Origin: Selaginella moellendorffii
Lineage: Eukaryota > Plantae > Lycopodiophyta
Assembly (NCBI RefSeq): GCF_000143415.4
Contig: NW_003314320.1
Coordinates: forward strand, 370,586 to 434,585
DNA: 64,000 nucleotides
Reading direction: 5' to 3'
Positions 1 through 57,233 of the stretch are shown here, one piece after another. Both the position numbers and the translations under genes were made by a program. Numbering within the stretch: position 1 is the stretch's first letter; each line of letters opens with the position of its first letter. The notes under the pieces are model-generated. The model was not told the origin of the DNA. It ran no database searches and worked only from the letters and a program-made list of their open reading frames with translations.

Positions 1-2330
1 ATCTCAGGATATGTATATTGTCTAGCATTTGGGTCATTTATATTTAATTCAAACTATTTTGTCAACATCATAGCTCTTTGAAGTGTCATTTGTTCAGAAC
101 CTTCTATAAAATAAACATTTTGAAATTTTGGAAAATGGATACGGATTATAGGGATCGAACGACTATGCATTTTAAATTTAAAAAGTCTCTATATTGCCTT
201 TAGAGCAGATTCATAACGTGCTTTATAAAATATTGAAATAAATATTTAATACTTTTTATAGTAGCACAAATTTCAATATTAATATGAGCATTATATTTTT
301 TACAAAGGTATTTATTATAAGGCACTACCCAACGATTATCAATATAACACCCACTTTTTATATATATACAGCTATTATCAGGTCTATAATAATTTGGATA
401 TCCATCAACACTAAAAGTAATTTTGTAATTAAATTTTTTCTGATAACCTTTTGAGCAAGTGCCATTTTTCATGCAAAGACTATTAGAATAAAGAGGCTCA
501 CATGGATCATGTATCATATGAGATGTAATTATTTTAGAAATTTCAAGTTCATTTTGAGGATCAAGCAATTGTGCCGTTATATATTGGTCAATAACATCAT
601 GGTCTTTAATCTTGTTTTCATAAGATAAAATCCCTAGAAAGTGACAATGTGGAAGGCCTCTTTTTTGAAATTCAATTACATATATAAAAGCAATACAATT
701 TCCAAAAATATATTTTTTAGTAATATCATTCAAAAATTCTTTAAGCTTGATATGAAATGCTCTAGAAACCAAGTTTGGACGATCCTCAGTGCCTTCATTT
801 GGATGTAAGTTTTAGCCATTTAGCATTGCATGTAAAAGTAATGAAAAGATTTGGCTTTGAAAAATGAGTAACTATAGCTATTGCATCTTGATAATTTTGT
901 TGTATTGCTCTAGGGCCACCCCCAAAACTTGAAGGTAAAATAACAATCTTGCCTGGATTTATATTTTCATTAATAGCACAGTTTGCACCATAATCCATAA
1001 GATCAGTATACATTTCAACTTGCAATTGTTTCTAATGAGTGCGATAGTAATTCAAATTATTGCTTTCAACTTTTACATAAGCATCAACTATATATTGTTG
1101 TGTGAGTCTTTCTGCATGTAAAATTAAATTAAAACCAAAGTGTATTGTGTCTCTTATAGATAAATGGTATGCATAATATTGGAGTAATGTAATTCAACAT
1201 CTGGAATTAAAAATATTTTTATGCCAACCTTTGTCACCAAAAGGAAATATTAATGGGTAAACCATTGGATCACAATTATAATCAAGTGTTGAGATACATT
1301 TAGAATTGCTTACAGTTGGATATATACAAATTTCACGACTATGTGGCGGTTCTCCATCATCACTAACAAACACAACAGCATCATTTGTCCGTGGAGCATT
1401 ATAGCGTTGTGGATTAGTTCCTTCAGTTTTTAATAACATGTAAACACCACATATAAGATAACCTAAAAGTGTAGCAAAAAAAATTTCTTCTTGTTCCATT
1501 TCATACATCATTTTGAAAGCTTGAGCATATGGGTTAACATGACAAAGGAGAGCATCAAGATGTTTAAGTAAGTTTGTCTCACGGCTTGAATTAAAAGGGT
1601 TTTGCTTTCTTATATCTATAGCTTCTAGAGTATCAAGCATATAAAGTTGTCCATAGGTTCAATATTGACCTTCAGAAGGATGTGCTGAAACAATATTATG
1701 ATATATTTGACCATGGATTTTAAAGCAATAAAGACCATGACCTTTTACAATATTAATATTAGAAGACATAGATGCAAAAGCAAGAGCACTATTGTAGTGT
1801 CTAATATTTGTTTTAAAATTAGAGTTCTTATTTTGCTTGTAAAGTGAAAGTAAATCAAATGGTAAAGGTGAAATTGGAGGTAATATAACTTGGTTATTCT
1901 AGCAACACATTGAAGAGTTTTCATCTTTAAAATGCAATGCATTACAAAAAGTACAAACAAATGATAAACTACCAATATTAAAATTTATTATGTTAAAGTC
2001 ATTATAAATGCTATGGCTTGCTAGTGTGGTATTCATGGGTGGGAGTGGTAGATTTAATATTGCTTGATATATATAATCATCATAATAACGTGCATGTAAG
2101 GTTCCAGATGCTTCTAACTGTCCAATTGATTGCTGTATATAATCATTATCATGATTAATATTTTGGTATATAGAATCATTATCATGATTATTTTGAACAG
2201 CTATAGTATGTGTATCATGGTCAATCATAGTTTCAGAGGCATCTAAATCTCCATTAGATTGTTTACTATGTCGTATGGTTCTCAAACGATGGCAGAGGCA
2301 AGGCATTTTCAGTCACTTCGATTATAGGTT
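1..2330 (-). mobile_element. Decayed Helitron Rep/helicase (rolling-circle transposon), N-terminal/Rep part; continues beyond the left edge
   Basis: Broken ORFs 200-772, 795-1025, 1194-1640 and 1899-2306 carry Helitron Rep motifs VIEFQKRGLPHCH (HUH), ILPSSFGGGPR..QNYQDAIA...FITFTCN, DPMVYPLIFPFG..GWH and DNRWVVPYN...AHINIEIC. Multiple stops and frameshifts; AT-rich. Confidence 0.92.
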
Positions 2331-3548
2331 TGATTATATATATATATTTTTAATTGAGTTTGTATAGAAGTTTATGCAGAATAGAAATGCAGACTACAGT
2401 TGGATATATATAAATTTCACAACTATGTAATGATCTGAAAGGAAAATATTAGACTTTTGCGAAGCACACTCAAGAACAACAAAATAACTCCACTGTTGTG
2501 TTTACCAATCTCTGCCTCATAATCCACAGCTTTGCAATTTTGAGCTGCAGCCCCAAGTGCTGCTCCTACGCCAGCATCAGGTTACCTGGCACAGCATCCT
2601 AGCACAGCATCGTTGAAACCAGCCCTCAAACTCTCGGAAACTGGAACTAAATTTTAGATTCGACAGAAGTAGTATCAGACAGAAAAAAAATCTCATCATA
2701 GAATACAAAGATATTCAAACTTACGACTTACCTCGATCTAAAAACGAAGCTAAACCACGCGATGCTTGCGGTGGCGCCTTCTGCTTCTCCTTCTCTTTCA
2801 AGAGAACCCAGACATCAGTGCTGTGTCGGATTTCCAAAACTTCAGGAGCAGTGTTGGCTGGCACAGCCACTCGACAGCCCTACGTCAACTCGAAACACCT
2901 GGTTCCTACAAACGGAGTTGATCCCGAGCATGTGCTGAAACAAAAATCCCTCACCAGGCCCAGCAGCAAGGGATTCCTCGAGAGAATCCGGGGATGAAGA
3001 GGGAGTGTCCTTGATAATTGCTTTCTTGTAGGCCAAAGAGCTCGTGAGGCGGTGGCGAACAGGGATCAAAGCTTTGCTGAGTTGGAGATGAGCCAATTTG
3101 CCTCTCACAATCCTGAGTTGATCCCGAGAGGAGCCTCGATTGTGTGCCCGACTACCATTCTACTCGCCCCTGTTACTTACCACGGCTCTCACGGGAATGC
3201 CCACACAACCGTGTCCGAGTAGAGCAGCCATGGAGCCCTAAGAGTGCATGGCATACACACCCTCTTCCCTTCCCGGCCACGCATGCATCCCGCCCATTGG
3301 CCGCCACAACATTGAGCCGATATTCCCGCTAACCATGGCCACCGGCCCTGGTCCGAGCCTGGGCTGGTCTCCCCTTCCCAAGAACCATGGCTTCCGAGGC
3401 TGCCCCGGGCCCGGGATCGGACGGCTGCGGGGGTCTGGGCTCTTCGTTCTTATTATTATAGATTAAAGGCAAACACCAAATATGGTTCTTGTACCTCTTT
3501 GTATTGTATACATAATCAACTCTTGTAGTCACTCTCATTAGTGGAACG

Positions 3549-4628
3549 ATGCCACCACACACGGGATTACCAGACGTTCTTTGGTTTTATATCTTGTCCA
3601 AGCTGCTGGATGTTGAATCACTGGTTCGAGCATCCCTTGTTTGCAGGGAATGGAACGGGTTTGTTCGTAGCGAGGGCAACGATATCAAGCAAAGGTGTAA
3701 ATCTCCACTCTTGTTTCTTAAAGTGGAACTTCGAAGGCTGGCATGCTTCAATCCTCAAAGTGGCCAGCTCTACGATCCCAACACCTTTTTTCTGCCACCT
3801 GAGGTATCAGTTTCATTATCCAGCATTCCAGTCGCTAGCTCCAATGGTTGGGTGTTGTGGAGGTACTACACAGAGGAAGATATGGTCTCTCTGGTGATAA
3901 ACAATCCCTTGGTACGATCCAGCTCAGTGGCGCTGCCACACTGCCATGACGTTCAGTTGGAGGATTGGATTCAACCTGAGAACTTCGCCATGCTTGCGGC
4001 CAAAGACGGCAGCAGCTTTTGCATATCTTTTGTCCTCTTTGGTACCATTAATGCGTATGCTTATACTGCGGGTGGTCATGATCATGATCAGAACGAGTGG
4101 AGAACGGTCGGGAATGGAAGATATAAGGGACATAGGGTTGCATGGACTAATTTTGAGCACTGCCACATCTTAGGGGAAAGCGGTCACTGGGTTTACAAGC
4201 CCCAAAATGATGAATGTGTGCTTGTGGGGAAATTGGAAAGCTTGGAGGATTACGAGTATGGTGCTTTTGGATTAGTCTCGTTGAGAGGAGAGCTCGTCAC
4301 CGTGAGATTCATGAACGGGCCCATGCGTTTATCACTGGTAAAAAGTGTTGACGGGTTTGTAAAAGAGGAGGAAAAATGGGTTTGTGCTGAAACTATCCCA
4401 TATAGGAGAAAGAAAGTGTTTATTTGCTTGGATAATGAGTTCCACCACGTTCCATGGAAACTAACGGTGCTTGATTTGAAGACTGGAGTGTGGAAGGTTG
4501 AAAAGCTTGTGACACCAATCAAGTTTAAATGGTGCCCTCTAATGAAAGAAACCGATGAAGCTCAGCCATGGCCGAAAGATTGGCCCATGTCACACACATT
4601 AGCATTTGTTCCAAATCCAAAAATCTAA
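3549..4628 (+). CDS. F-box protein with probable beta-propeller substrate domain (paralog 1 of 3), intronless
   Basis: N-terminal F-box LPDVLWFYILSKLLDVESLVRASLVCREWN; PVASSNGWV motif; C-terminal HTLAFVPNPK shared with ORFs at 8848 and 10666. Confidence 0.88.
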   Translation: MPPHTGLPDVLWFYILSKLLDVESLVRASLVCREWNGFVRSEGNDIKQRCKSPLLFLKVELRRLACFNPQSGQLYDPNTFFLPPEVSVSLSSIPVASSNGWVLWRYYTEEDMVSLVINNPLVRSSSVALPHCHDVQLEDWIQPENFAMLAAKDGSSFCISFVLFGTINAYAYTAGGHDHDQNEWRTVGNGRYKGHRVAWTNFEHCHILGESGHWVYKPQNDECVLVGKLESLEDYEYGAFGLVSLRGELVTVRFMNGPMRLSLVKSVDGFVKEEEKWVCAETIPYRRKKVFICLDNEFHHVPWKLTVLDLKTGVWKVEKLVTPIKFKWCPLMKETDEAQPWPKDWPMSHTLAFVPNPKI

Positions 4629-4941
4629 AGAAGCTATAGTTTGTCTTCAGAGAAAGAGTTTAGGGTTGTGTTTTGTGAGAGAGCGTGGGTGCAGGAGAAT
4701 TCGTGCTCGATAAAATGGAGCTCGACGGGTCACGGCATAGCTCCCGGGCCTCCATAGTAGGCGAAGTTGCCACCTCGGGCTCCTTGATCTACGCGGGCAT
4801 TTTATTCTAGAGCCGGCCCCATATCTTAAGCTATGAAACTCGTAGCTGGAAAATTTGGGAAAGAAACCCCCGTGCAAATCGATCGAGGGAGAAGAAAGAA
4901 GCACGAATGGAAGATTGGGGATCCACAATCCCTAGTGGATT

Positions 4942-5230
4942 CTAGTCCAGCTTCAGAGCATCGAGAGCCATCTCAGTCTTGTACATGGCGTGCTTGAAAC
5001 CCTGGCCGATCTGTAGGACCCGAGTGGCAAAGCGCTTGGCATTGGCAGCGTTGGTGTGTAGGAGAGCGTTGGCCTGGAGTTGCTCATCGTTGTCGATAGA
5101 ACTGTGGACTGCGGCGAGATCGAGCTGGCGGAGGGTGGGGATGAATGAAAGCCGCCTCGGTGCCGTGGAGAAGTTCCTCCAAGTCTCGCTTGAGCTAGAT
5201 CGCTCTGCCCATTGGAATGTTGTGTGCCAT
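4942..5230 (-). pseudogene. Small helical protein family, copy 1 (in-frame TAG at codon 12 plus one frameshift)
   Basis: Manual translation MAHNIPMGRAI*LKRDLEELLHGTEAAF../TLRQLDLAAV...NAKRFATRVLQIGQGFKHAMYKTEMALDALKLD* aligns by eye with the 98-aa ORF at 11866-12162. Preceded by a 5'UTR intron (gtgag...ctgcag) and TATAAAAT. Confidence 0.7.
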
Positions 5231-5378
5231 CCTCACTGCAGAGAAGAGAAACGAAACAGAGAGAGAGAGAGAGACGAGAAGGAGAATCTAGAAAAGAAAA
5301 ACACACTCACCTTGTGGAGAGAAGAGAGAACAGCCGAGAAGACAGCGCTTAAAGAGAAGAATAGCGAGCTGTAGCGGA

Positions 5379-5524
5379 TTTTATAAAGCAGGAGAGATTG
5401 ACCATTGACCTTTGAATATCTTTGACTTGGATCTCTGAATATCTTTGACTTTAGATTTTCGACAGCTAAAGCATCATAAAAATCTTGGATTTTGAATTCC
5501 GTTAGAGATGTTTGAAAGTTGACC
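5379..5524 (-). promoter_or_regulatory. TATA box plus cluster of five W-boxes (TTGACY, WRKY sites)
   Basis: TATAAAAT on minus at ~5379-5386; TTGACC/T at 5398, 5405, 5422, 5445 and 5519. Confidence 0.6.
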
Positions 5525-5944
5525 CATAAAATCTTCTTAATGAATAGATTTTTAACTTAAGGCACTCTTCATGACGTTCACTAATCATGTGTTTAACAGA
5601 GCAAGAGTACCGAGATTAGCTACTCCTTGCCATGGTTGCTTTTGAGCCTTTTGAGGATTTCATACAATTACTTGGGAACTGCGGTTCTAGGATCTCTTCA
5701 CCATCTAGTGCTTCTTGAAACGTCTTGCTCACAAGAGCGTTGCTCGTCGCATGGATCAAATATATATATAGTTTACTTACTTCAAGCTTACTTGAGGAAT
5801 GTCTTAGCTTAATCTTTCTTAATCATCAATTATGTACATTTTAAATACTTTTCCTGATAGTTTGTATTTGGATTTCCTGATTTCATTCGTCTGTCAGTAA
5901 CAAAAAAAAATGCCCTGTATTAAGTTCTTCTTTGCCCGTATCAA

Positions 5945-6028
5945 AGTCAAAGTCACTGAAATCTTTACGGGATCACGTCAAAGTCCAAGCAGTCCTCAGT
6001 CAAAAGTCAATATCCTGCTCTATAAAAT
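5945..6028 (+). promoter_or_regulatory. W-box cluster plus TATA box of small-protein copy 2
   Basis: AGTCAA at 5945, 5998 and 6005; CGTCAA at 5976; CCTGCTCTATAAAAT at 6014-6028, matching CCTGCTTTATAAAAT of copy 1. Confidence 0.6.
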
Positions 6029-6095
6029 GGCCAGCTGGGGCGTCTCGGCTCTTCAGCGGCTCGCTAACGTCTCGGCTCTTGTCTGCGCGGCTCTC

Positions 6096-6428
6096 TAACG
6101 TAATTCGTCTAGGCGGAAGCCAGTGAGCGTGTCCCCGATGGCGTCTTCAGTCACACGGGCGATTCGCTGGAGCTCTCCTTTGATCGCCAGAACATTGCGC
6201 ATCGCCTCTGCCGCCATCCTGGAAAAGAAAGAGAAACGAGAGGGAGAGAGACGGAAGAGATGAGAGATGAGGGAGTAGAAGAAGAGCACTCACACGCAAC
6301 CGGGGCTTCGTGCTATGGGGGAAATCGGGAAGCGCAAAGCAACAAAACTGGAGAAGATCGGAGAAAAGTTCGAGCGTGCTGTTCTGGATGCCGAAAAGGC
6401 TCTGCGTGAGCTTGTTGTAGATTTCTAG
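6096..6428 (+). pseudogene. Small helical protein family, copy 2, disrupted by a ~200-bp internal inversion
   Basis: 5'UTR intron and N-half (MAAEAMRNVLAIKGELQRIARVTEDAIGDTLTGFRLDELR) read on minus 6293->6096. C-half (TQPGLRAMGEIGKRKATKLEKIGEKFERAVLDAEKALRELVVDF*) reads on plus 6294-6428. The promoter is on plus. Confidence 0.75.
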
Positions 6429-6699
6429 TTGAATCTTGTGTGCCGTCGGTGCCGCATTGTCAAAGTTCTATTCTACGCAATTTGTTCTCGGCCATGGGCG
6501 TCCTCTTGTCTCCAATACATTCATCTTCACGGCTCGCATCCAATCCTTGAACAGCCATGCCTTTCTCCAGTGCATTCATCTTCACGGCCTCTCCTTGCCG
6601 CCAAGCTCGTGCAAACTTCAAGTGACACAAAGGAAAAAATCGAACCGAGGAAACACCAAACTACCAAACTCTTACCTATGCCGCTCACTCTCCTCTTCC

Positions 6700-7850
6700 G
6701 ATTGTCACGTACTTGGGCTTAAAAACTATAGCGATCATACCACCTGGAATTTTGTGATGGTAGAAATTTGTCTCGCAACTTTAAAAAAAAGAGCTTACCT
6801 TCAAAAGAATGATGCAATCTAGATCTCGGCCAAGCACCACATTATAGTCCTGCCAAACACCGGAAACGCAAATTGTACGTAGAGATCAAACAATCGTAAA
6901 CCATTCCGGAACGTCTGACAGAGCCGAATATCCTGCAAAACAAAAGCAGCTATGTAATTGCCTTGACACTGTCGAACTTGACTTGCTTGCTAAGGGTGCC
7001 CTCTGTCTTCAAAGTTTCCTGGCAGAAAGAATTACGTGGTTAGACGCACTAGGACCAGCTCTAGAGACTGCTTACTTTCTGGGGCTCGTCTCGTTAATTC
7101 CTCGCCACCTCACCAGATCGATTGCCTCCTCCGGTTCTTCGATCTAAAGCGGGAGTAAACGAAGTAAGAAAGAAAAAAAAGTGTTGTTTACCTGTGCAGA
7201 AGTCACGTTGAAACGTCCATCTGAAGCCATTGGTCTTGTTCTCTTGCGCTTCCAAACTCCGTAGCTAGACCCGCCTGTGTATGGTCGATAAGTAGCAGAA
7301 GAAGAAGACATAACCTGCCGGTTGCTCAGAAGCGCAAGAAAGCGTTCAAACTCGTTTTCTTGATGAATTGAAGCTCCTACCCTGTGCCTGCCAATGGAGC
7401 TTGTCAAGTTAGACGACAATCACCACAATGGAGTAAACGGCGCTTACAAGAACACCTCGCTACTAGTTAAACTCGGCTAAACATTACTTGATTCGAACTG
7501 GTAGCCTCATTTTACTGTTTTTCAGCACATTCCTGGGCTTGAATCTGTGTTCCAAAGGATAAGTTTTTACTTATTTATTTCAAGGAGCTCTTACCTCTTC
7601 CAGACCTCGTCAAGCCTCTCTTCAATATACTGCACAACGTCGGTGATCTGTTTCTGCCAATTCTTCGCACGACACATCAAAGAAGACAGAAATTTCCGAC
7701 GTCGACTTAGAGCTCACCTGTGTCCCGCATAATCCCGAGACTCTTCGTACACCACCGATGTCCAGATGCTGTTCAGAAATGCCACGAAAAGATGAATAAA
7801 CTATAGAAAAAGAGACAGACATTCAACATCACCTGGAACTGGAACTGACT
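6700..7850 (-). pseudogene. Unidentified multi-exon gene fragments
   Basis: Exon-like blocks bounded by GT-AG signals on minus (e.g. IWTSVVYEESRDYAGHR|gtgag, KQITDVVQYIEERLDEVWKR|gtaag, DYNVVLGRDLDCIILLK|gtaag). No family recognised. Confidence 0.3.
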
Positions 7851-7899
7851 TTAGCCGCCGCCACACCAGCTTATACTTTTGCCACAGCAGTAATCGGCA

Positions 7900-8845
7900 C
7901 CTTTGGAGAACACAGCTCGAATACGATCAAGTGAAAGCTCTCCAGTCCCCGATTTCCCACTCCCAAAACTCGTTCTTTCTGCTAGAGCTCCGCCCGAAGC
8001 CCATACAGCTGCTTTCCAAACTTAGTGTGGATAAGTATGCCGAGATGCCATGCCTCGTCTCCCTGATTCTGAAGAGGCCGTGAGAGACATTGGAAAGTGT
8101 CGAAACGCTACCTTGGCGGAAGAACTGCGTGACTGCTTCATTTCAAAGCCTTCGAGCAGGGACTCCATTTTCAGGGAGTCTGTCGCCAAACAGATTTGTT
8201 GGCCACGCGAAGCCCGATGGCCATGGTATCATCAAAACCAAGAAACAAGTACTTCCAGCCACCAAGAACCTATCAGAGAAGAAATAGTTTTCCACTGTAA
8301 GTTTCACAAGCAATGATCCAAGTTAATGCACCGTGACAGTTCCCGCTTGAACAGGATCGACCGACACGATTCATATCTGCGCTGATGCTGTACCGAGAAA
8401 AGAAGTCCAGTTCGCGATTGGGAACACCAAACCTGTCATGGTTGCCACGAAGATCGAAGAACACACTTTGTGGCAATCGGCTTTCTTTTGAGACGTGCTT
8501 CATAGTTTTGTTCGTCTTGCCTTGTCACAGAGAGGTCTCTGTTCTTGGCAGCTAGAACGAAATGCAAGGGATTTTTTAGAAAAAGTTCGTGGGAGAGACC
8601 AAAATTACCAGTGAGATCGCCGGTGACGAGCACCAGAGCAGGCCGGACGAGCGCCAAAAGCCGCGAGGCCACACTTCCGCTCGATTTGGATGAAAAACAC
8701 TCACATCGAGATCGGAGATCTGAAAGGCCCAGTCGCGCTCGCGCTCTTCGCCAGGATCAGGTGCGAGGAGACAAAGATCGATTTCTTAAGCGCCAGATAA
8801 CCTGAAAAATATTTTAGGGTTCTTGAGAAAATTATTGCCACTTCA
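7900..8845 (-). pseudogene. Degraded inverted partial duplicate of the metallophosphoesterase gene (5' ~1 kb, introns retained)
   Basis: Reverse complement matches ~13345-14420 (MKHVSKESRLPQSVFFDLRGNHDRFGVPNRELDFFSRYSISADMNRV; LLALVRPALVLVTGDLTG), including upstream sequence and introns. Many deletions. Confidence 0.9.
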
Positions 8846-8847
8846 TT

Positions 8848-9921
8848 TCAATTAAGTTTTGGATTAGGAACAAATGCTAATGTGTGTGACGTATGCCAAT
8901 ATTCCGGCCATGGCCGAGCTTCATCCGTTTCCATCATTAGCGGGCACCATTTATATTTAATTGGCGTCACAAGCTCTTCAACCCTCCAGACTTGAGTCTT
9001 CATATCAAGAACTAAATCTTTTGTCCATGGAATAAAGTGGAACTCATCATCCAAGCACACAAACACTTTCTTTGTCCTGTCCTGGATGACTACCGTCCCA
9101 GAATCCCATTTTACCTCCTCTTTTACAAAACCGTCAACACTTTTTACCAGTGATAAACGCATAGAATTCTTGACAGGTCTCGCAGTCATGAGCTCTCCTC
9201 TCAGCAATACTAAACCAAACATACCATACTTGTAATTGTCCAAACTTTCCAAAGTCCCCACAAGCTCACATTCACGAGCTTGAGGCTTGTAAACCCAGTG
9301 ACCGCTTTCCCCTAAGATGTGGCAGTGCTCAAAATCAGTCCATGCAATCCTATTTCTCCTCCAGTTTGGACCATTAACTTCTATCCACTCGTTCTCACCA
9401 CCAGCAGCATAAGAATACGCATAAAAGATGTCAAAGTCGACAAACGATATGCAAAAGCTGCTGCCGTCTTTCGCGGCAAGCATGGCGAAGTTCTCAGGTT
9501 CAATCCAATCATGCTTTACTTCTGGGCAGTGTGGTAGCGTCACTGAGCTGGATGGTACCAAGGGATTGTTTAGCACCAAAGAGACCGTCTTTCCTTCTGT
9601 GTAGTACCTCCACAACACCCAACCATTTGAGCTCGCCACTGGAATGCTTGATGGCGAAACTGACACTTCCGGTGGTAAAAAGAAAGTGTTGGGATTGTAG
9701 AGCTTGCCACTTTTAGGGTTGAAGCACGCCAGCCTTCTTAGCTCCACTTTAAGGAACAAGAGCGGGGAATTACACCTCTGCTTGATGTGGCTGCCATCTC
9801 CACGAATAAATGTATTCCATTCCTTGCAGACAAGGCTCGCTCGAACTAGCGTTTCAACATCCAGTAGCTTGGACAAGATATAGGACCAAAGAGCGTCTGG
9901 TAATCCGCCGTCTGCTGACAT
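8848..9921 (-). CDS. F-box protein (paralog 2); start at MSADGG (9921) or 9948
   Basis: LPDALWSYILSKLLDVETLVRASLVCKEWN; colinear with paralogs 1 and 3. Confidence 0.86.
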   Translation of the reverse strand: MSADGGLPDALWSYILSKLLDVETLVRASLVCKEWNTFIRGDGSHIKQRCNSPLLFLKVELRRLACFNPKSGKLYNPNTFFLPPEVSVSPSSIPVASSNGWVLWRYYTEGKTVSLVLNNPLVPSSSVTLPHCPEVKHDWIEPENFAMLAAKDGSSFCISFVDFDIFYAYSYAAGGENEWIEVNGPNWRRNRIAWTDFEHCHILGESGHWVYKPQARECELVGTLESLDNYKYGMFGLVLLRGELMTARPVKNSMRLSLVKSVDGFVKEEVKWDSGTVVIQDRTKKVFVCLDDEFHFIPWTKDLVLDMKTQVWRVEELVTPIKYKWCPLMMETDEARPWPEYWHTSHTLAFVPNPKLN

Positions 9922-10259
9922 CAGAGTACAGAAAAGGATTTCTAACATGTTTATAACCTTTTAATTGTAGAGAATATTCTCAAACGATATAAGGATTCGC
10001 GCCTAACGAATCCCCTCTCTACAAGTGAAGATAAACATAAATAAATTAAAACTTATCTTTTGGAACACAGCCCAGCTATGAAGGCTTGGATGTTTGAATC
10101 AAGCAATGTTAAGTCGAGTTTTCCGCAGGGAGAAGTGACAACGAGTGCCAAGCTTGTCCAAGCTCTTGTAAGCGCCGGTTACTCCACTGTGGTGATTGTC
10201 GTTTAACTTAAGATCCATTGGCAGGTACAGGTTAGGAGCTCCAATCTCTTGAGAAAGGA

Positions 10260-10665
10260 AGATCGAAGAACACACTTTGTGGCAATCGGCTCTCTTTCGG
10301 TAAGTTCTTCCATGGTTTTCCACTAACACAGCAGCTTTGCTGGTCACCCCGCAAGTGTGGAAGTTCCCAGCTCAGATGAAAATAGCTATATCACTCTGGC
10401 TAGTAGCCATGTAGATCCGTTTTGCCAGGTTTGGTTTCTTTTTTTTTTCACTTCTCATGTCTTTTTATGATCTATAGATTTCTTGAGCCAGCTCTCGTCC
10501 TGCCCAGCTACTCGAAATGTACAAAGGCAACTCCATCGTGAGGAGGTCCAAGAGAGTAGCTCATGAGCAAAATCACCACAGTGACGATTGAACGGCCCAT
10601 GCGACAAATCGATCTTCGTCTCTTCGCTGGCAAAAACCTAGACGAAAATGAGAACTTTATCAAAT
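10260..10665 (-). pseudogene. Second, more eroded remnant of the metallophosphoesterase 5' end
   Basis: 10260-10320 matches the reverse complement of ~13755-13815. 10570-10655 matches patches of 13380-13650 (ttcgtctaggtt, gtcgcatgggccgttca). Confidence 0.65.
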
Positions 10666-11733
10666 TTAAGTAAGTTTTGGATTAGGAACAAATGCTAATG
10701 TGTGTGACGTAGGCCAATTTTCTGGCCATGGCCGAGCTTCATCGGTTTCGGTCATTAGTGGGCACCATTTAAGTTTAATTGGCATCACAAGCTTTTCCAC
10801 CCTCCACACTTGAGTCTTCAAATCAAGCACCATTTGTGCTTTTGTCCATGGAAGAAAGTAGAATTCATCATCCAAGCACACAAACACTTTCTTTCCGTCA
10901 TGGATAACTACGGCCCCAGAATTCCATTTTACCTCCTCTTTTACAAAACCGTCAACACTTTTTACCAGTGATAAACGCATGGACTTCCTGACAGATCTCG
11001 TAGTGATGAGCTCTCCTCTCAATGAGACTAATCCAAAACCATTCGCATAGACCTCCAAACTTTCAACTTTCCCCACAAGCACACATTCACCAGTTTGTGG
11101 CTTGTAAACCCAATGACCGTTTTGCCCTAAGATGTGGCAGTGCTCAAAATCAGTCCATGCAATCCTATGTCTCCTCCATCTTAGATTCTTATTAACCTTC
11201 TTCCACTGGTTCTGGCCAACCACAGAAGCATACGCATAAATCTTATCAACGTTGACAAAAGATAAGCAAAAGCTGCTGCCGTCTTTTGCCGCGAGCATGG
11301 CGAAGTTCTCAGGTTCAATCCAAAATCTGTCTATTCCTCGGCAGTGTGGTAGCTTCACTGAGCTGGATGGTACCAAGGGATTGTTTATCACCAAAGAGAC
11401 CATATCTTCTTCTATGTAGCTCCACAGCACCCAACCATTTGAGCTCGCCACTGGAATGCTTGATGGCGAAAATGACAGTTCAGGTGGTAAAAAAAAAGTG
11501 TTAGGATTGTAAATCTTGCCACTTTTAGGGTTGAAACACGCTAGCCTTCTCCATTCCACATGAAGGAACAAGAGTGGAGAATTACACCTCTGCTTGATCT
11601 GGCTGCCATCTCCACGAATAAACGTATTCCATTCCTTGCAAACAAGGCACGCTCGAACTAGCGATTCAACGTCCAGTAGCTTGGACAAGATATAGAACCA
11701 AAGAGCGTCTGGTAATCCCGCGTGTGCTGGCAT
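10666..11733 (-). CDS. F-box protein (paralog 3)
   Basis: MPAHAGLPDALWFYILSKLLDVESLVRACLVCKEWN...HTLAFVPNPKLT. Confidence 0.88.
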   Translation of the reverse strand: MPAHAGLPDALWFYILSKLLDVESLVRACLVCKEWNTFIRGDGSQIKQRCNSPLLFLHVEWRRLACFNPKSGKIYNPNTFFLPPELSFSPSSIPVASSNGWVLWSYIEEDMVSLVINNPLVPSSSVKLPHCRGIDRFWIEPENFAMLAAKDGSSFCLSFVNVDKIYAYASVVGQNQWKKVNKNLRWRRHRIAWTDFEHCHILGQNGHWVYKPQTGECVLVGKVESLEVYANGFGLVSLRGELITTRSVRKSMRLSLVKSVDGFVKEEVKWNSGAVVIHDGKKVFVCLDDEFYFLPWTKAQMVLDLKTQVWRVEKLVMPIKLKWCPLMTETDEARPWPENWPTSHTLAFVPNPKLT

Positions 11734-11865
11734 CGTTCCTAGCTAACGAGAGAAAACAAAAGAGCCATATTCGGTCTGCTTTTTTATTGTAGCGAATATT
11801 CTTAAAATTATCTGCTTTGTTCTTTCCAGGAATTCGATCGAGATCTGCGATTCACAACAACCAAC

Positions 11866-12162
11866 CTAAACATCTAGTTCATTCACAGCCGCCCCTGCAG
11901 TCATCACGGCCCGTTCAAAGGCCTCCCCGAGCTTCTCGAGCTTCTTTGCCTTGGCCTTGGCATCTCTCCCCTTCCGGGCAATCGATCGCGAGTAGGGGTT
12001 TTCCTGTAGGATGCGATTTATCTCCTTCTTGAATTCCTTGCGGTCGAAGGAATTCATGGTGTCCCCGATGGCAATTTCCGTGGCAAGCAGGAGGTCATGG
12101 AGCTTCTCCTTGAGCTCGATAACGTCACGCACCGCAGCATTCAGCTCTTCTTTTCCCGTCAT
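11866..12162 (-). CDS. Uncharacterised 98-aa alpha-helical/coiled-coil protein (intact copy 3)
   Basis: ttccag|G-ATG start as in copy 2; MTGKEELNAAVRDVIELKEKLHDLLLATEIAIGDTMNSFDRKEF...KAKKLEKLGEAFERAVMTAGAAVNELDV*. Two paralogs lie in the window. Confidence 0.75.
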   Translation of the reverse strand: MTGKEELNAAVRDVIELKEKLHDLLLATEIAIGDTMNSFDRKEFKKEINRILQENPYSRSIARKGRDAKAKAKKLEKLGEAFERAVMTAGAAVNELDV

Positions 12163-12204
12163 CCTGGAAACAAAACAGACCAAGAGAAATGTGAAATGTG
12201 TGTG

Positions 12205-12550
12205 AGAGAGAGGGGCGGGGCGGGAGAGCACGAGCGCGAGAATGAGAAGGAGAGTGCACGAGCGCGAGGGACAGGGAGAGAGCAAGCGTGAGAGGAGAGG
12301 GAGCCCAGAGGGAGAGGGAACACGAGCGCGAGAGAGGGAGAGGGAGAGAGCAAGAGCGAGAGGGAGAGGGAACACGAGCGCGAGAGAGGGAGAGGGAGAG
12401 AGCAAGAGCGAGAGGGAGAGGGATAGCGCGAGCGCGAGAGGGAGAGGGAGAGGGAGAGGGAGAGAGCAAGCGCGAGAGGGAGAACGATAGCGCCAGCGCG
12501 AGAGGGAGAGAGCAAGCGCGAGAGGAGAGGAAGAGCCCGAGCGCGAGAAT
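12205..12550. repeat. GA/CT-rich tandem repeat (~42-bp unit) in the leader/intron of copy 3
   Basis: Repeated gagcgcgagagagggagagggagagagcaagagcgagagggagagggaacac units. Confidence 0.85.
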
Positions 12551-12637
12551 CAGCAGTTGAGTCGGGGTGGCCGCTTGCCGAGACGTGCTGAGACGAAACC
12601 ACGAAGCAACCCAATCGACCAGAAGAGCCGAGAAACA

Positions 12638-12678
12638 TTTTATAGGCACCCAGGTTGAATAACTTTTTGACTTTGACA
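12638..12678 (-). promoter_or_regulatory. TATA box and W-box of copy 3
   Basis: CCTATAAAAT on minus at ~12638-12646; TTGACT at 12667 and TTGACA at 12673. Confidence 0.55.
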
Positions 12679-13073
12679 ACAAAGAAAATCTTAGACTTGG
12701 ACTATTCTGTTAAGATCACTGCTCCACGTGTTTCTTTGCCTTGAGAGTAGACTTCTTGTTACGATCTGGCGTGGAGTATATTTACAAAAACGCTAAAACA
12801 ATGCAACGATGTTTTCTTGGCTTAAAAATTTTCAAGGACTGAGTTTAAGCATTATGGAGCTTGTGAGGGATTATATAGTTTACATATCCACGTGTATTTA
12901 ATCCCCGCCTTCACCGTTCAGGATGATATCCTTAGACAATGTGTCAACTTTGGTCATTTGCTTCGAGCAATGGCAAGTGCACTTCTGGAAACTTATGGAA
13001 TTTAAACTAGTCAATAATTAATAACAACTCTTAATGAATGTTTAAAATTCATAAACACTACAATATACTGTTT

Positions 13074-13160: not shown

Positions 13161-13394
13161 TCTTTACAAGCTTTCTTAAGCAAACCAAAAATGTGAAAAT
13201 ACTATTTATTAACGACAGTTAGTAATAATTATCATTTCTATATTATTTATTAATTATTATGAAAAATAGAAAGTCAATTTATTTAATGGTTTAAGAATAT
13301 TTCCCGGCTGACTGAAGAATTCTATTATCCTGGTAGGAAACGGATGAAGTAATTCCCTCAAGAACCCTAAAATATTTTTCATTTCGTCTAGGTT

Positions 13395-15777
13395 ATGGCG
13401 CCTATCTGGCGCTTACCAGTAGCTTTGATCGCGCTCGCGCTCTTCGCCAGGATCAGGTGCGAGGAGACAAAGATAGATTTCTCAGATGCGCCAGACGCTG
13501 TCGCATGGGCCGTTCAGATCTCCGATCTCCATGTGAGTGTTTTTCATCCAAATCGAGCGGAAGATCTCGAGATTCTGGCCTCGCGGCTTCTGGCGCTCGT
13601 CCGGCCTGCTCTGGTGCTCGTCACCGGCGATCTCACTGGTAATTTTGCGCTCTCCCACGATTTTTTTCTTAACATTCCCTTGCATTTTCGTTATAGATGC
13701 CAAGAACAGAGACCTCTCTGTGACAAGGCAAGATGAAGCCGAGTGGATGCAGTACCAGAAAACCATGAAGCACGTATCGAAAGAGAGCCGATTGCCACAA
13801 AGTGTGTTCTTCGATCTTCGTGGCAACCATGACAGGTTTGGTGTTCCCAATCGCGAACTGGACTTCTTTTCTCGGTACAGTATCAGTGCAGATATGAATC
13901 GTGTAGATCCTGTTCAAGCGGCAACTGTCACGGTGCGTTAACTTGGATCATTCCTCGAGCTTGTGTAACTTACAGCTGAAAACAATTTTTTCTCTGACAG
14001 GTTCCTGGTGGCTGGAAGTACTTGTTTCTTGGCTTTGATGATACCATGGCCATCGGGCTTCGCGGGCCAACAAATCTGTTTGGCCATCCGACAGACTCCA
14101 TGCTTGGGAAAATGGTGTCCCTGCTCGAAGGCTTTGAAAAGAAGCATGCACCCAGTTCTTCCGCCAAGGTAGCGTTTGGACACTTTCCAATGTCTTTCAC
14201 GGCCTCTTCAGAATCAGGGAGACGACCCGAAGAGATTCTCGCGAGGCATGGCATCTCGGCATACTTGTGTGGCCACCTCCACACCAAGTTCGGAAAGCAG
14301 CTATATCGGCTTCACTCGTACCCGGGCAGTGGCACCTTTAGCAGAAAGAACGAGTTTTGGGAGTGGGAAATCGGGGACTGGAGAGGCAGCAGGACCGTGC
14401 GAGTGCTTTCACTTGATCACGGCCACACTTCGTTCGTGGATATCAGGTTGGACGGGACGATGAACTTCACGACGATAGTCTTACCGACATATCCTTTGGA
14501 TTCGCGGTTTATGAAGAGGCATCCAGCTTACACTGGAGATGATGAAGACCACGGTGATCGCATTCGAGCACTTGTGTTCTCCGAGGTGCCGATAACATCT
14601 GCGGTGGCAAAAGTATACGACAGCAAGTCGGGCTCTCTCCGTCTGGTCGACGAACTTGATATGCAACTCACTTGGGGTCCTAACAACAAAGCAGTTTTCT
14701 ATGAGACAAGATGGAGGAGAAACAGGTACTCGGATCCGTCGGCCCTGCGGTACTGGCTAGAAGTTTTGGTGACTGATTCTTCAGGCAGGAAGACTGCGAG
14801 CGAGCTTAGGCCGTTTTCGGTAGACGGCAAAGTCGCAGAACTTAAGTGGGGATTCTCGGAGTTTCTCGTGATGGGAGTACAGTGGGCCGATGCTTATCTG
14901 CTTCTTTTTTGGCTTAGCATTGGACTGCTGGCCGCAGTACTTTTACTGCCAAGGCTTGCGTACGTTCGTCTCAAGCAGAAGAAGGCGTATAAGAGCTTCG
15001 TTTCTTCGGTGCTGGCCTGGAACACGAAGAGCGGAGGTTCGTATTTGGAGTATGCGCTGAAGAGTGTTGGATGGATTTTCATGGAAGGGTCTCGGAATGA
15101 CGGACTATGGTGGGGACAACTCGCGTTAGTTACTTGGCTAGTTTTTCTTCCATGGTTTTGGGGGTATCCATTTGGAGATGGCCATGCAGCAGGATATCTA
15201 AGCCGCACAGGTTGGCACATTCAGGAACTTGGAAAGTCTGGCTTAGCTTCCCCGGACGTCTTGGTCATCGTTTTGCCGTTTCTTTACATGGTCGTCTTGC
15301 CACTAAGCGTGGTGATCGCCGGTTTGTCAGCCGAGAGAGCAGCCTGCGAAGCCCATCAAGCAAAGCATTGTGGAAAAACGAGCAAGAGCGAAGGAAGTAA
15401 GATGTCACGGAAGAAGCTGAACGAAAAGTCCGACTCTGGCCTGCTTCAGCTTCTGGAAAACGAGGCCAAAGTCGAGAAGAAGCGCTGCGTGGTGTGCTCG
15501 AGATGGAGGAGGAAAGCGCTTCTTGCAGTCTGTTTACTCATCGGCTGGCTTCATTGGCGGGTAAGCCTTTGTTCTTGTTCTTGCGAAGCTAGCTTTTCCG
15601 AAAAATTTTCTTCTTTTGTTCTTGCAGCAATGCTACTGGGTCGCGGTTGCTTTCGACTGGAAATGGGGATGGGCTTCTCCCGGCTTCGTGTGGTCCGTTC
15701 CCGTGCTCATGATCTCCACGATCTTCACAACCTGCGGGATTCGCAAAAACTCAAGGCAAGTATACGAACATATTTGA
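13395..15777 (+). CDS. Membrane-anchored calcineurin-like metallophosphoesterase (TMEM62-like); 4 exons (introns ~13639-13697, 13933-14001, 15560-15627)
   Basis: Signal peptide; motifs SDLH, TGDLTD, RGNHD, FGHFP, CGHLH; C-terminal transmembrane segments; spliced frame ends TGA 15775-15777. Confidence 0.9.
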
Positions 15778-17400
15778 GAGTAGTGTGTAGGGAGCACTGT
15801 CGTTTCCTTCCAGCGAAACAACTCTTTCAGCAGCCTCCAGAGCCCGTGTAAACTCTCCGTGAATGGCACACGCACAGAGAAGGCTCATCCAAGCCACAGC
15901 GTCCTCGTGAAACGGCATAGCTTCTATCAAGTCTTGAGCTCGATCGAGCTCTCCAGCTCGTCCAAGGCTGTCTACAATGCAACCATAGTGCTCGGCGCTT
16001 GGAGAAATCCCATACTCTCTTCTCATCTCCAGGAAGTAGAAAAAGCTCGCGTCTAAGCTCTGGTTTGAGCTCTGGAGAAGGCTCACGAAAGTCACTGCAT
16101 TGGCTTGTATGCCTTCCAAGCTCATCTCTCTAAAGAGAGTGGCTACCACGGTTACGTGACCACGGTTGGAATATGCCGCCAGCAGCGTGTTCCAAGTGAC
16201 CGTAGTTTTTGTGCGGATGTCGCGGAATGCCGCGGCGGCCCGCGGTAGCTCGCCCACCCTGCCGTACGCTTGGACCAGTGCCGTACCGGTGAGAGGCTCG
16301 CGTTGGCGCTGGCTATGGAGAATATGCCCGTGGATGTCTTGGGCGTCGGCTAGCGAGCAGCAAGCGCCAAGCACAGTGGCGAATGTTACGTCGTTCTTGG
16401 CGAGATCCATGGCGCGGTAGAGCTCCAGGGCTTGATCGAAGCGTCCGGCGAGCGCGTAGGCCTGGATTATGCTGTTCCAGGAGACGACAGTTCTAATCGC
16501 GCGGGGGATTCGATCGAAGACGGCCTTGGCGTCGGCGAGGCTTCCGCACTTGGCATACATGCTGATGAGCGCGTTGCTCGTCACAGCGTCGCCGATTTGG
16601 TCGTAGGCGCGGGAAGAGATCAGGGCGTGCGCTTGCTTGCCCTGGGAGAGCCCTGGGGTTCCAAGATTGGAGCAGGCGCCAAGAACGCTGATCAATGCGG
16701 TCTTGTCGATCAGCCTGGGATCCATCCGTCGGTAGAGGTCCAGCGCGTCGGATGGATGCCCGTGCTGGGCATACGCAGTGATCATCGCAGTCCAGGAGAT
16801 TTGGTCTCGGTTCTTGCCCAGGAGCCGAAATATCGCCATGGCATCCGATAATCTTCCCCAGCGGCCATAGATCGTGAGCAGGGAATTCACCACAGCGACA
16901 TCACTGCCACATCTGGAGTGGACGGCTTCTAGAATCCGCCGGATTCTAGCGGACTGGGGCAGGATCGAGCAAGCGCGGACGACGCAGAGGAGCGTGATCC
17001 GGTTTGGCCTCACGGATCCATCGCAATCCATTCTCCAGAAGAGCTCCAGCGCCGCCAATCCATCGCCGCTGCGCAGGCACGCCCCAAGGACGATATTCCA
17101 GGAGAAGAGATTCTTGTCGCGAATATCTTCGAAGGCCGCGATCGCGTCGCGCGTGCTGCCGCATCGGCCATACATTTGCACGACGAGATTGTGGAGGTAG
17201 GGTTCTTGGGAGCGATCGTGGAGCGCGACCAGCGAATGCAGGCGCTTGGCATCGGCTAGCACACGGCATTTCCTCAGCGAGAAGAAGGAGCGATCCTTGT
17301 CCTCCTCGAGCTCCTCCTCCTGTTCTTCGATCCGGCGCTTCTCCTTGGCGAAGGATCGCAGCTTCTGGATACCAATCGAGCTGGAAGGTATGGCGTTCAT
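15751..17400 (-). CDS. PLS-class PPR protein with E domain, intronless
   Basis: PPR repeats (NALISMYAKCGSLADAKAVFD, VVSWNSIIQAYA); E domain EHYGCIVDSLGRAG...AWMSLLCAC...APYTLLSN; no DYW. Start taken at MNAIPS. Confidence 0.9.
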   Translation of the reverse strand: MNAIPSSSIGIQKLRSFAKEKRRIEEQEEELEEDKDRSFFSLRKCRVLADAKRLHSLVALHDRSQEPYLHNLVVQMYGRCGSTRDAIAAFEDIRDKNLFSWNIVLGACLRSGDGLAALELFWRMDCDGSVRPNRITLLCVVRACSILPQSARIRRILEAVHSRCGSDVAVVNSLLTIYGRWGRLSDAMAIFRLLGKNRDQISWTAMITAYAQHGHPSDALDLYRRMDPRLIDKTALISVLGACSNLGTPGLSQGKQAHALISSRAYDQIGDAVTSNALISMYAKCGSLADAKAVFDRIPRAIRTVVSWNSIIQAYALAGRFDQALELYRAMDLAKNDVTFATVLGACCSLADAQDIHGHILHSQRQREPLTGTALVQAYGRVGELPRAAAAFRDIRTKTTVTWNTLLAAYSNRGHVTVVATLFREMSLEGIQANAVTFVSLLQSSNQSLDASFFYFLEMRREYGISPSAEHYGCIVDSLGRAGELDRAQDLIEAMPFHEDAVAWMSLLCACAIHGEFTRALEAAERVVSLEGNDSAPYTLLSNMFVYLP

Positions 17401-17451
17401 ATTTCTTCCATTGTTTTTTAGTTCTAGGTTTTCGTCCAGGGAGTGATAGCA

Positions 17452-22935
<5,484 letters not shown>

Positions 22936-25345: not shown

Positions 25346-27505
25346 ATGCCACTGCTCCACCGTCAAGAACGCTTCGTTGGCCTCATCAGGTGCTGCGTCG
25401 ATGCCAGGAATCTTGCCTTGCTCCACTCCCAGATTCGCGAGAGCGGCCTTGGCACGGACAGATACCTCGGCAATCTTCTCATCCACAAGTATGGCAAGCT
25501 CAGAAACTCGGATCATGCCTTTCAAGTTTTCCAAGAGATCAAGCACAAGAACATCTTTTCGTGGAGTTCCATGCTTGGCGCATTCGTAAACAGCAGGGAT
25601 GCCGACGGCGCAAAGGTGGCATTCGATCGAATGCCAGAGAGAAATAGTGTGTGTTGGACGTCGGTGATTCTTCTAAATGCGAAGGTTGGGCATTTGGAGC
25701 TTGCGTTAAACATGTTTCAAAGAATGCCAGAGAGAGATATCATCTCTTGGACCGTCTTACTGCAAGCCACTGCCGAGAGTGGATTTTCTGGTTATGCTCG
25801 AGCATTGTTTGAAAGAATGCCAGAGCAAGATCCAGTTTGCATGAACACAATGATAAATGCATATGCCCATTGTGGGTATCTGGACCAGGCAGAAGTTTTG
25901 TTTTATCATCTGCCGGAGCGAACGGTCGTATCCTGTTCGCTGATGATCAGCATTTTTGCAAGACTAGGCCGTGTCACGGAAGCAAAATGTGTTTTTGACT
26001 CTATGCCGCTAAGAAACGTGGTGGCGTGGAACGCGTTAGCAGCCGGATATGCCCATTGCGGGCATACACTCCAGTCGCAAAGAATTTTTGAGCTCATGCC
26101 ACTAACGAGCGCTGCGTCTTGGAACACTCTCGTCGTCGCGTTTGCAAACAATGGCGGCATTCAGGAAGCACTCGAGACCTTCCATTCGATGCCCGAAAGG
26201 AATGAAATCTCCTGGAATGCATTGATCCAGGCGCAAAGCTCACCTGCCTGCCGCGAAAGAGTCTTCCAGACGATGCCCTCTTGGGACATTGTTTCGTGGA
26301 CGCTTTTGATATCGATGTGTTCCAATGCCACAGAACTGAAGCCCCTCTTTGACAAAATGCCCGCCAAGAACGTCGTCTCATGGACCGTACTCGTTTCTGC
26401 AAATGCCCAGGGCGGGCACGTACGGCAGGCCGAGGTGGCTTTCGTACGGATGCCGCAGCACGGCCGCGTCGCCGCGACCAGCATGGTTGCGGCGTACGGC
26501 CATTCCGGCCGCATTGCCGCCGTGGCTGATACCTTCGATTCCATGCTGGAGAGAGACGTGGTGGCGTGGAGCGCCGCCGTGGCTGCAAATGCCCAGAACG
26601 GGCATGACGTGGAGGCCATCCGGACGTTCCACCTAGCGCTACTCGACGGCGTGGCTCCTGACCGCGTTTGCTTTGCCAGCGTCCTACTGGCATGCGCCCA
26701 CTTGGGGACGGTCAACGCCGGTCGTGACTACCTCGTGAGCATGAGCTCTGACCACCGTGTTGACCCCACCTGCGACCACTTTCTGACCATGGTTGACTTA
26801 CTCGGCCGCACGGGTCGGGTGAAAGATTGCGAGGATTTGGTCAACGCAATGCCGTACGTGCCCGGCGACGTGGCGTGGATGAGCCTGTTGGGCGCGGCCC
26901 GGTCGTACGGCCACATGGGAGCCGGCGTACGGGCGGCTGAGAAGTTGATGGAGCTCGAGGCGTGCGGAGAGTACGGCGGCGGCGGCTGCCCGTACGTCTT
27001 GCTCGCGAATCTCTTTGCCGGGGCCGGGTGGCACGCCGAGGCCGCGAGGGCGAATCGTGTGATGAAAGAAAGAGGGGTGAGAATCCATCGCTGCGTGAGC
27101 AGCATTGAAGTTGGCGGTGTGGATCACAGGTTTTGCGTCGGCGAGGATCTTGCCGCGCATCCACAGGGCGAGGAGATCGCGATGGAGCTCCGGAGATTGG
27201 AGAGGATGATGGTGGAGCAAAGGCTGTTTGCTCCAGAGGTCCGGGAGGTTCTTCACGACATTGGAGAGAGCGAGAAGGAGCGGCTCCTCTGGCAGCACAG
27301 TGAGAGGCTGGCGATCGGTTTTGGCCTGGTTGCCACTCCGCCTGGAACCCAACTGTGGATCATCAAGAACCTCCGGGTGTGTCTCGACTGCCACACCGTC
27401 ACCAAGTTTATCTCGCTCGTCACCAAGCGCAGGATTGTTGTGAGAGACTCGAATAGATTCCATCATTTTGACGATGGAAGGTGCTCCTGCCAAGATTATT
27501 GGTAA
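25346..27505 (+). CDS. PLS-E-DYW PPR protein (organellar C-to-U editing factor type), intronless
   Basis: PPR array, E/E+ domains, HSERLA, KNLRVCLDCH, terminal CSCQDYW. Confidence 0.96.
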   Translation: MPLLHRQERFVGLIRCCVDARNLALLHSQIRESGLGTDRYLGNLLIHKYGKLRNSDHAFQVFQEIKHKNIFSWSSMLGAFVNSRDADGAKVAFDRMPERNSVCWTSVILLNAKVGHLELALNMFQRMPERDIISWTVLLQATAESGFSGYARALFERMPEQDPVCMNTMINAYAHCGYLDQAEVLFYHLPERTVVSCSLMISIFARLGRVTEAKCVFDSMPLRNVVAWNALAAGYAHCGHTLQSQRIFELMPLTSAASWNTLVVAFANNGGIQEALETFHSMPERNEISWNALIQAQSSPACRERVFQTMPSWDIVSWTLLISMCSNATELKPLFDKMPAKNVVSWTVLVSANAQGGHVRQAEVAFVRMPQHGRVAATSMVAAYGHSGRIAAVADTFDSMLERDVVAWSAAVAANAQNGHDVEAIRTFHLALLDGVAPDRVCFASVLLACAHLGTVNAGRDYLVSMSSDHRVDPTCDHFLTMVDLLGRTGRVKDCEDLVNAMPYVPGDVAWMSLLGAARSYGHMGAGVRAAEKLMELEACGEYGGGGCPYVLLANLFAGAGWHAEAARANRVMKERGVRIHRCVSSIEVGGVDHRFCVGEDLAAHPQGEEIAMELRRLERMMVEQRLFAPEVREVLHDIGESEKERLLWQHSERLAIGFGLVATPPGTQLWIIKNLRVCLDCHTVTKFISLVTKRRIVVRDSNRFHHFDDGRCSCQDYW

Positions 27506-41945: not shown

Positions 41946-42429
41946 GGTCTGGCTGGCCTACACTGGCCCATGCCGCATTTGTGTACGGAATGATGGAGGT
42001 TGCAGCAGCCAGCAAGCAAACTTTCTGGTTTGCTTTTACTTGAAATTACAAGTCCACATTTCAATATGTTTTCTTATTTAGAGTTCAATTGAATTTTTGG
42101 GTTTTAGACATTGGCAAAATAGTTATAAATTGGCAAAACATTCTAGAATATATATATATATAAAAATATATATATAAATGAATATATATAAAAAATTATG
42201 ATTCTAGATAATAGTATAAACTACTAGTTTTAAAGAGTTATAGTTTTAGTACTAAAACTATATATAATCATTTACTACATGTTTAATTACTCATCTTTCC
42301 TAAATATTAAAAAAGCTAGGTATAATTTTTTTTTACAAGATTGTTTTAGCTTATATAATATAAACTTAGTATAAGATAATGAGGAGAATATTCAAATTCA
42401 TACTTAGCATGGTTGTGCTACAACTAATT

Positions 42430-57064: not shown

Positions 57065-57138
57065 CCATAGTAAGGTTTATAAATACATATACATACATAT
57101 ATATATATACATATACATACATATATATACATATACAT

Positions 57139-57233
<95 letters not shown>

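Follow-up and report, generated by a model that had tools for sequence, protein, structure and literature searches.

We analyzed a 64,000-nucleotide stretch of DNA from the lycophyte Selaginella moellendorffii (hereafter the window; contig NW_003314320.1 of RefSeq assembly GCF_000143415.4, positions 370,586 to 434,585 of the forward strand), in which three F-box genes lie among three copies of a gene for a small helical protein. An earlier reading of the DNA letters without database searches (the sequence-only reading) had described three intronless F-box paralogs interleaved with three small genes, and this description is confirmed by the open reading frames (ORFs) and by Pfam F-box-like matches. 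It had further proposed that the two families form one module, in which a stress-inducible small effector is paired with a substrate adaptor of the SKP1–CUL1–F-box (SCF) type, either as an immune executor and its regulator or as a toxin and its antidote. Three haplotype versions of the locus were compared, namely the window itself and two versions from the public v1 assembly of S. moellendorffii, L001 (scaffold GL377674.1) and L002 (the 6.7-kb contig GL378016.1), which are 94–99% and 85–95% identical to the window, respectively. The window and L001 diverge in a mosaic fashion. Identity is 93.7% around F-box gene 1 (window 3452–4897), where the alleles differ by 0.082 synonymous substitutions per site (dS), 99.4% around copy 2 of the small gene (window 5901–7763), and 96.9% from 7764 on. 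This mosaic suggests old haplotypes, with recombination or gene conversion inside the locus.

F-box gene 1 (F-box1; 3549–4628, plus strand) is intronless and encodes a 359-residue protein with an N-terminal F-box and a β-rich C-terminal domain. F-box gene 2 (F-box2; 8848–9948, minus strand) is also intronless; its ORF extends to 9948, and homology indicates that the conserved start at 9921 is the likely one, giving a protein of 357 residues. F-box gene 3 (F-box3; 10666–11733, minus strand), again intronless, encodes 355 residues. The ORFs, 355–366 codons long, are 71–78% identical in pairwise comparisons among the three proteins, and all three match the Pfam F-box-like family with E values of ~3e-8. 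The F-box itself scores above the cut-offs in all six proteins from the window and L001, with 33–34 bits for PF12937 (cut-off 24.3) and 23–25 bits for PF00646 (cut-off 20.5). The only database matches of the F-box proteins are SELMODRAFT_428972, to which F-box3 is 98% identical, and SELMODRAFT_428974, which corresponds to F-box1. The public v1 annotation of this region is faulty in several respects. F-box2 (window 8848–9948) is absent, the F-box3 model (L001 17304–18219) is cut to 276 residues with a false C-terminus, and a 398-residue model with no Pfam domain (L001 12557–14972) begins over the broken copy 2 of the small gene and continues ~2 kb past it. No small gene is annotated. We also considered carriage of the F-box ORFs by a transposon and found it unsupported, as the known copies occur only at this locus.

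The F-box ORFs are intact in all seven complete instances across the window, L001 and L002. The ratio of nonsynonymous to synonymous substitution (dN/dS) is 0.40–0.54 between the paralogs and 0.27–0.35 between alleles (0.35 for F-box1), and these values indicate that moderate purifying selection preserves the trio intact. The ratio varies along the protein, being ~0.16 in alignment columns 61–120, just past the F-box, and 0.6–1.3 in columns 121–300, as would usually be expected of an adaptor whose recognition surface or targets are changing. Beyond the F-box domain, the proteins have no Pfam match even at an E value of 10. When the C-terminal 300 residues were compared by a protein language model, every neighbor was a plant F-box-associated propeller, and KIB1-4/DUF295 ranked first, at 0.93 (186/256 features). 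An AlphaFold2 model of F-box3, computed with only six close sequences aligned, had a predicted local distance difference test score (pLDDT) of 33 and contains mostly short strands. The C-terminal recognition domain is probably of the plant F-box-associated propeller type, and we treat the KIB1-4 neighbors as a lead only.

The trio resembles the F-box/DUF295 proteins (PF03478, Beta-prop_KIB1-4; Arabidopsis KIB1) in having an F-box followed by a β-rich domain of ~300 residues and in these embedding neighbors; it differs from them in that none of the six F-box proteins matches the PF03478 profile at E values up to 10, and its only fold model is the one of pLDDT 33. The origin of DUF295 has been placed in the angiosperms, and surveys report no DUF295 F-box protein in Selaginella (PMC6501883; PMC3030570). 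DUF295 membership was therefore not adopted. Selaginella has ~544 F-box genes that evolve by lineage-specific birth and death (PMC3030570), a frame that the trio appears to fit. Like the lineage-specific plant FBX genes under "genomic drift" (Hua et al. 2011, PMC3030570), the three genes are intronless local duplicates found in one species only, and they combine a conserved F-box with a fast-diverging recognition domain that contains no recognized Pfam module. Unlike those genes, they have kept their ORFs whole in three haplotypes, at dN/dS of 0.3–0.5, which places them outside the neutral or pseudogene class. We infer that the trio are species-private, putative SCF substrate adaptors under constraint.

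The three small genes are in very different states. Copy 1 (4945–5524, minus strand) is a pseudogene, whose coding remnant (5230–4945) is interrupted by a TAG stop at codon 12 and, near codon 28, by a +1 frameshift. Upstream of this remnant are an intron in the 5′ untranslated region (5′UTR; 5310–5236, GTGAGT...CAG), the motif TATAAAAT (5385–5378) and five TTGACY elements (5398–5524). Copy 2 (5945–6428, plus strand) is broken by an inversion. Its promoter and exon 1 (5945–6099), with W-boxes at 5945–6010 and TATAAAAT at 6021–6028, and its C-terminal half (6294–6428) are on the plus strand, and a 192-bp segment between them (6102–6293), consisting of the intron and codons 1–40, reads on the minus strand with its ATG at 6217; ~25 nt have been lost at the junction. 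Copy 3 (12162–11866, minus strand) is intact and encodes a 98-residue protein with three predicted helices. The leader and promoter of copy 3 (12163–12677) contain a CAG at 12164–12166, a CT-rich microsatellite at 12187–12525, TATAAAAT at 12644–12637, and TTGACT and TTGACA within 12667–12677.

The other haplotypes extend this pattern. The L002 version of copy 2 is an unbroken ORF of 92 codons (L002 2950–3228), collinear and with promoter and intron intact, and the L001 version carries the same inversion as the window. Copy 3 of L001 has a 1-nt deletion after codon 68, which leads to an 86-residue product with a wrong tail. A contig from the data set X1 carries this deletion, the adjacent substitution and an L001-specific insertion in the 3′UTR, and the lesion is therefore real and the allele is transcribed. 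In copy 1 of L002 the stop at codon 12 is replaced by CAG (Gln), the frameshift is kept and the C-terminal part is deleted. Copy 1 of L001 lies partly inside an assembly gap; with copies 2 and 3 broken, no intact small gene is seen in that haplotype. The intact copy thus differs between haplotypes, being copy 3 in the window and copy 2 in L002, and the claim of the sequence-only reading that two of the three small genes are dead while all F-box genes are intact holds in the window and reaches to two more haplotypes. The small family appears to be undergoing loss copy by copy, in a haplotype-specific manner.

The comparison of copy 3 with the L002 copy 2 bears on whether these short ORFs are genes at all. 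The two are 43% identical over 90 codons, and the insertions and deletions between them are all in-frame. Between copies 2 and 3, dN is 0.475 and dS ~1.39, giving a dN/dS of ~0.34, and identity by codon position is 0.64/0.66/0.44, with the third position the most diverged. Their DNA is otherwise unalignable, while the layout of promoter and intron persists. These features identify the small ORFs as a genuine family of protein-coding genes, with products of 92–98 residues.

Transcription was assessed in a small number of samples for which the conditions are unknown, namely X7, an RNA-seq run examined as raw reads, and X1 and X3, which are sets of contigs only guessed to be RNA. In X3, a 248-nt contig matches 11787–12034 in small gene 3 exactly. 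X1 contains a 225-nt contig over 11847–12057 and a further contig at 12549–12592 that runs into the CT repeats. The X1 and X3 contigs cover small gene 3 and its leader and none of the F-box or intergenic DNA, and because of this restricted coverage they fit RNA. X7 has ~2 raw reads on the copy 3 coding region in ~9 million reads. Reads were mapped without window 12307–12548, which was skipped by the mapper owing to the CT microsatellite. Copy 3, whose transcription the sequence-only reading presupposed, is therefore weakly transcribed, and the transcript evidence is modest. In two RNA-seq runs of ~9 million reads each, no read fell on F-box2 or F-box3; there were small gene 3 reads or none at all. 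We also considered whether small gene 3 could serve as an upstream ORF for F-box3, and rejected this: F-box1 and F-box2 have no such ORF, F-box2 has the upstream motif described below without a small gene, and there are no read-through reads.

Such low expression, together with the two dead copies of the window, the L001 copy 3 that is frameshifted yet transcribed, allelic differences in copies 2 and 3 that are mostly non-synonymous, though few, and the lack of relatives in any search, would fit a family that is now functionless and decaying neutrally, with its W-box and TATA motifs and weak transcripts as leftovers and the F-box genes as bystanders. Against this stand the clear coding constraint that acted in the past between copies 2 and 3, the retention of one promoter and intron architecture across very old, otherwise unalignable paralogs, and the retention of one intact copy by both of the haplotypes that can be judged, the window and L002. 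We regard a functionless family as unlikely.

The sequence-only reading had reported W-boxes and TATAAAAT upstream of all three genes, and both are there, with the W-boxes weak at copy 3. The window contains 11 TATAAAAT sites compared to 2.1 expected; most of those away from the small genes fall in AT-rich blocks (~30% GC) at 1–2000, 42000–44000 and 56000–60000, which are probably transposon remnants. TTGAC cores within 200 bp upstream number five for copy 1, four for copy 2 and two for copy 3, where 0.37 would be expected. Among 150-bp windows of the 64 kb, the copy 1 promoter ranks first in W-box density and the copy 2 promoter joint second. Clustered TTGAC(C/T) elements are thus present in the proximal promoters above chance, with the promoter of copy 3, which has one strict TTGACY only, as the weak case. 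The CT-rich leader with a splice acceptor just before the ATG, which had also been noted from the letters, resolves in copy 1 (window) and copy 2 (L002) into a 75-nt 5′UTR intron (GTGAGT...CAG) that ends 5 nt and 1 nt before the ATG, respectively. In copy 3 the leader is swollen by the microsatellite, and it has an acceptor-like CAG and no visible consensus splice donor. The microsatellite is compound, with units such as CTCTCCCTCTCGCGCT, and is the source of several ORFs, on either strand, that are long but spurious (such as 12125–12682).

Small defense and stress genes driven by WRKY factors through W-boxes occur in seed plants. The Selaginella small genes are like these in having clustered TTGAC(C/T) elements no more than 150 bp from a strong TATA box and low basal expression, and unlike them in that they encode an orphan helical protein that is not secreted and not rich in cysteine, and that copy 3 has a single strict W-box. 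From the promoter motifs, the small genes are most likely WRKY-dependent, with low basal expression and induction by stress or defense signals.

The small protein itself is predicted to be all-helical. A single-sequence model contains three helices with a pLDDT of 68 and a predicted template modeling score of 0.33, and no signal peptide or membrane segment is predicted for the copy 3 protein. Two motifs are conserved in the family, T-E-x-A-I-G-D-T at the end of helix 1 and the basic K-R/A-K-A-x-K-L-x-K-[IL]-G-E-x-F-E-R-A-V in helix 3. We searched for relatives in several ways. In a word-index search of proteins, neither copy 3 by itself nor a profile of three sequences found a match, and the best score in a search of the ESM Atlas, 0.75, was judged meaningless. 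An exhaustive HMMER search of 1.84 billion representatives returned a sole match, a repetitive 545-residue Ig-like repeat protein matched in five stretches, which we judged to be chance. Pfam contains no family that matches copies 2 and 3 at E values up to 10, RPW8, MLKL and Rx_N included, a profile search of the PDB gave only chance matches (E of at least 0.26), and an Rfam search of the whole window found no RNA family. Thus the likeness to MLKL four-helix-bundle, RPW8 or coiled-coil (CC) domains that the sequence-only reading had raised did not emerge from Pfam, and a Foldseek search of the PDB with the weak model gave no match. A wide VIA fold search with the same model returned generic coiled coils only (Z up to 5.7), with no MLKL, RPW8 or CC entry in the top 50. 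The small protein may be soluble and coiled-coil-like, acting by helix-helix binding to other proteins. No member of the family was found in the public annotation or in the protein databases searched, and we take it to be a previously unannotated orphan family.

Do the two families belong together? Both the distances and the orientations reported by the sequence-only reading are borne out: F-box1 and copy 1 are convergent and ~316 bp apart (~310 bp had been claimed), and copy 3 and F-box3 are in tandem, 132 bp apart. F-box2 is without an adjacent small gene, and the arrangements are hence convergent, tandem and absent. The ages of the families also differ. Between paralogs, dS is ~1.4 for small copies 2 and 3, with copy 1 more distant still, compared to 0.23–0.42 for the F-box genes, so the small paralogs are 3–6 times more diverged at synonymous sites. 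DNA similarity among the F-box paralogs runs from ~90 nt upstream of the ATG to the stop codon and does not take in the small genes. Because the similarity is confined to the ORF and these ~90 nt, the families were not duplicated as units. Our test of a two-gene module was a shared duplication unit with a constant arrangement, and the locus shows neither.

In the module as proposed, the small helical protein would be a costly effector made under stress, acting as immune executor or as toxin, and the F-box proteins would be dedicated SCF adaptors, regulator or antidote, that send it to the proteasome, such that haplotypes lose the harmful partner and keep the adaptor. The adjacency of two families that both appear private to the locus speaks for it, as do the tandem placement of small gene 3 and F-box3, the W-box promoters, which fit a defense gene, and the contrast between four independent lesions in the small genes across haplotypes and seven of seven complete F-box ORFs intact under purifying selection. 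The loss expected of a costly partner is indeed present; relaxed constraint predicts the same decay equally well. The unequal ages, the missing common duplication unit and the solitary F-box2 all argue against it. Moreover, no TTGACY is found upstream of any of the three F-box genes, F-box2 and F-box3 have no reads where small gene 3 has them, searches with the small protein and its weak model showed no likeness to RPW8, MLKL, CC or any toxin family, and the F-box genes are constrained in L001 although copies 2 and 3 are broken there and copy 1 is partly in the assembly gap. We consider the module improbable. Apart from adjacency, nothing speaks directly for effector/adaptor or toxin/antidote coupling, which we regard as unsupported but not as refuted. 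A true pair, in which a WRKY-induced, harmful or immune-executing coiled-coil protein would have its level set by dedicated SCF adaptors next door, with the live copy varying by haplotype, seems to us improbable.

Loci in which an F-box gene stands together with the gene for its target or partner are known, among them the S-locus with SLF and S-RNase and the rice Sa locus with SaF and SaM. As in those loci, F-box paralogs are clustered here with an unrelated small gene, and the state of the partner depends on the haplotype. The differences are that the small protein is not RNase- or SUMO-ligase-like and has no known family, and that no sign of co-duplication or co-expression is seen at the Selaginella locus.

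The explanation that we favor, and hold to be rather probable, is that these are two separate lineage-restricted families that are neighbors by chance in a locus with rearrangement and gene birth and death. The F-box genes would be recent local duplicates, intronless and encoding SCF substrate adaptors that change targets. The small genes would be an older orphan family, each copy with a TATA box, clustered W-boxes and a short 5′UTR intron, WRKY-dependent and induced in stress or defense, with a product that may bind other proteins through its helices; this family would be lost copy by copy, with different haplotypes retaining a different intact copy. Our observations comprise how the genes are built, their coding constraint and lesions, the differences between haplotypes, the motifs in the promoters and the weak transcription; to these the independence of the families, like WRKY control, inducibility and the SCF role, is added by inference.

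Several points weigh against chance neighborhood. Both families appear private to this locus, side by side, which in itself hints mildly at a link. The apparent youth of the F-box ORFs could be a product of gene conversion among them. F-box2 and F-box3 have in common a short AT-rich motif (~25 nt) ~60–80 nt before the ATG, probably the F-box core promoter. The 132-bp spacer between copy 3 and F-box3 (11734–11865, minus strand) holds the copy 3 3′UTR with AATAAA, which this motif overlaps, and the overlap of the 3′UTR with the likely F-box3 promoter makes some regulatory coupling possible. Finally, the expression side of our explanation draws on the few RNA samples introduced above, X1 and X3 among them, and induction through the W-boxes is deduced from the motifs.

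Rearrangement has also affected the neighborhood of the two families. The adjacent TMEM62-like metallophosphoesterase gene has been partly duplicated, and the duplicate, which derives from its 5′ part, lies inverted at 7938–8834 (minus strand), before F-box2. It takes in 5′ exons and introns and is 84–95% identical to 13350–14385. This pseudogene fragment is a marker of local rearrangement. The TMEM62-like gene itself is intact at 13395–15851 (plus strand), with Pfam matches to Ig_TMM62 and TMEM62_C and, in the public model, Metallophos. A 63-nt scrap of a TMEM62-like exon is located at 10258–10320, between F-box2 and F-box3, and RNA reads from the intact gene spill onto both fragments. Elsewhere in the window there are three intronless pentatricopeptide repeat (PPR) genes at 15751–17709 (minus), 25346–27505 (plus) and 34539–36440 (minus), one of which encodes E and DYW deaminase domains, as is typical of the RNA-editing PPR family, which is large in Selaginella. 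A long ORF at 39246–40838 (minus) matches Pfam Mem_trans (PIN/auxin-efflux-carrier-like membrane transporter), and an N-terminal fragment of a Helitron helicase-like protein is found at the start of the window (200–772, minus).

An F-box/effector module, for which the present case is adjacency alone, would matter far more if true, since a lycophyte would then have a locus of the effector-adaptor or toxin-antidote-like kind, made from two families without known relatives. As they stand, our data correct three public gene models, the missing F-box2, the truncated F-box3 and the 398-residue model over copy 2, and describe clean haplotype-specific gene death, in which an inversion of 192 bp, a frameshift and a stop codon affect different copies and alleles, which is useful for the study of the birth and loss of orphan stress genes. 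They also add a real, transcribed and hitherto unannotated orphan family to the Selaginella gene set. If control by W-boxes is true, WRKY-type promoter logic would drive lineage-specific genes in a lycophyte.

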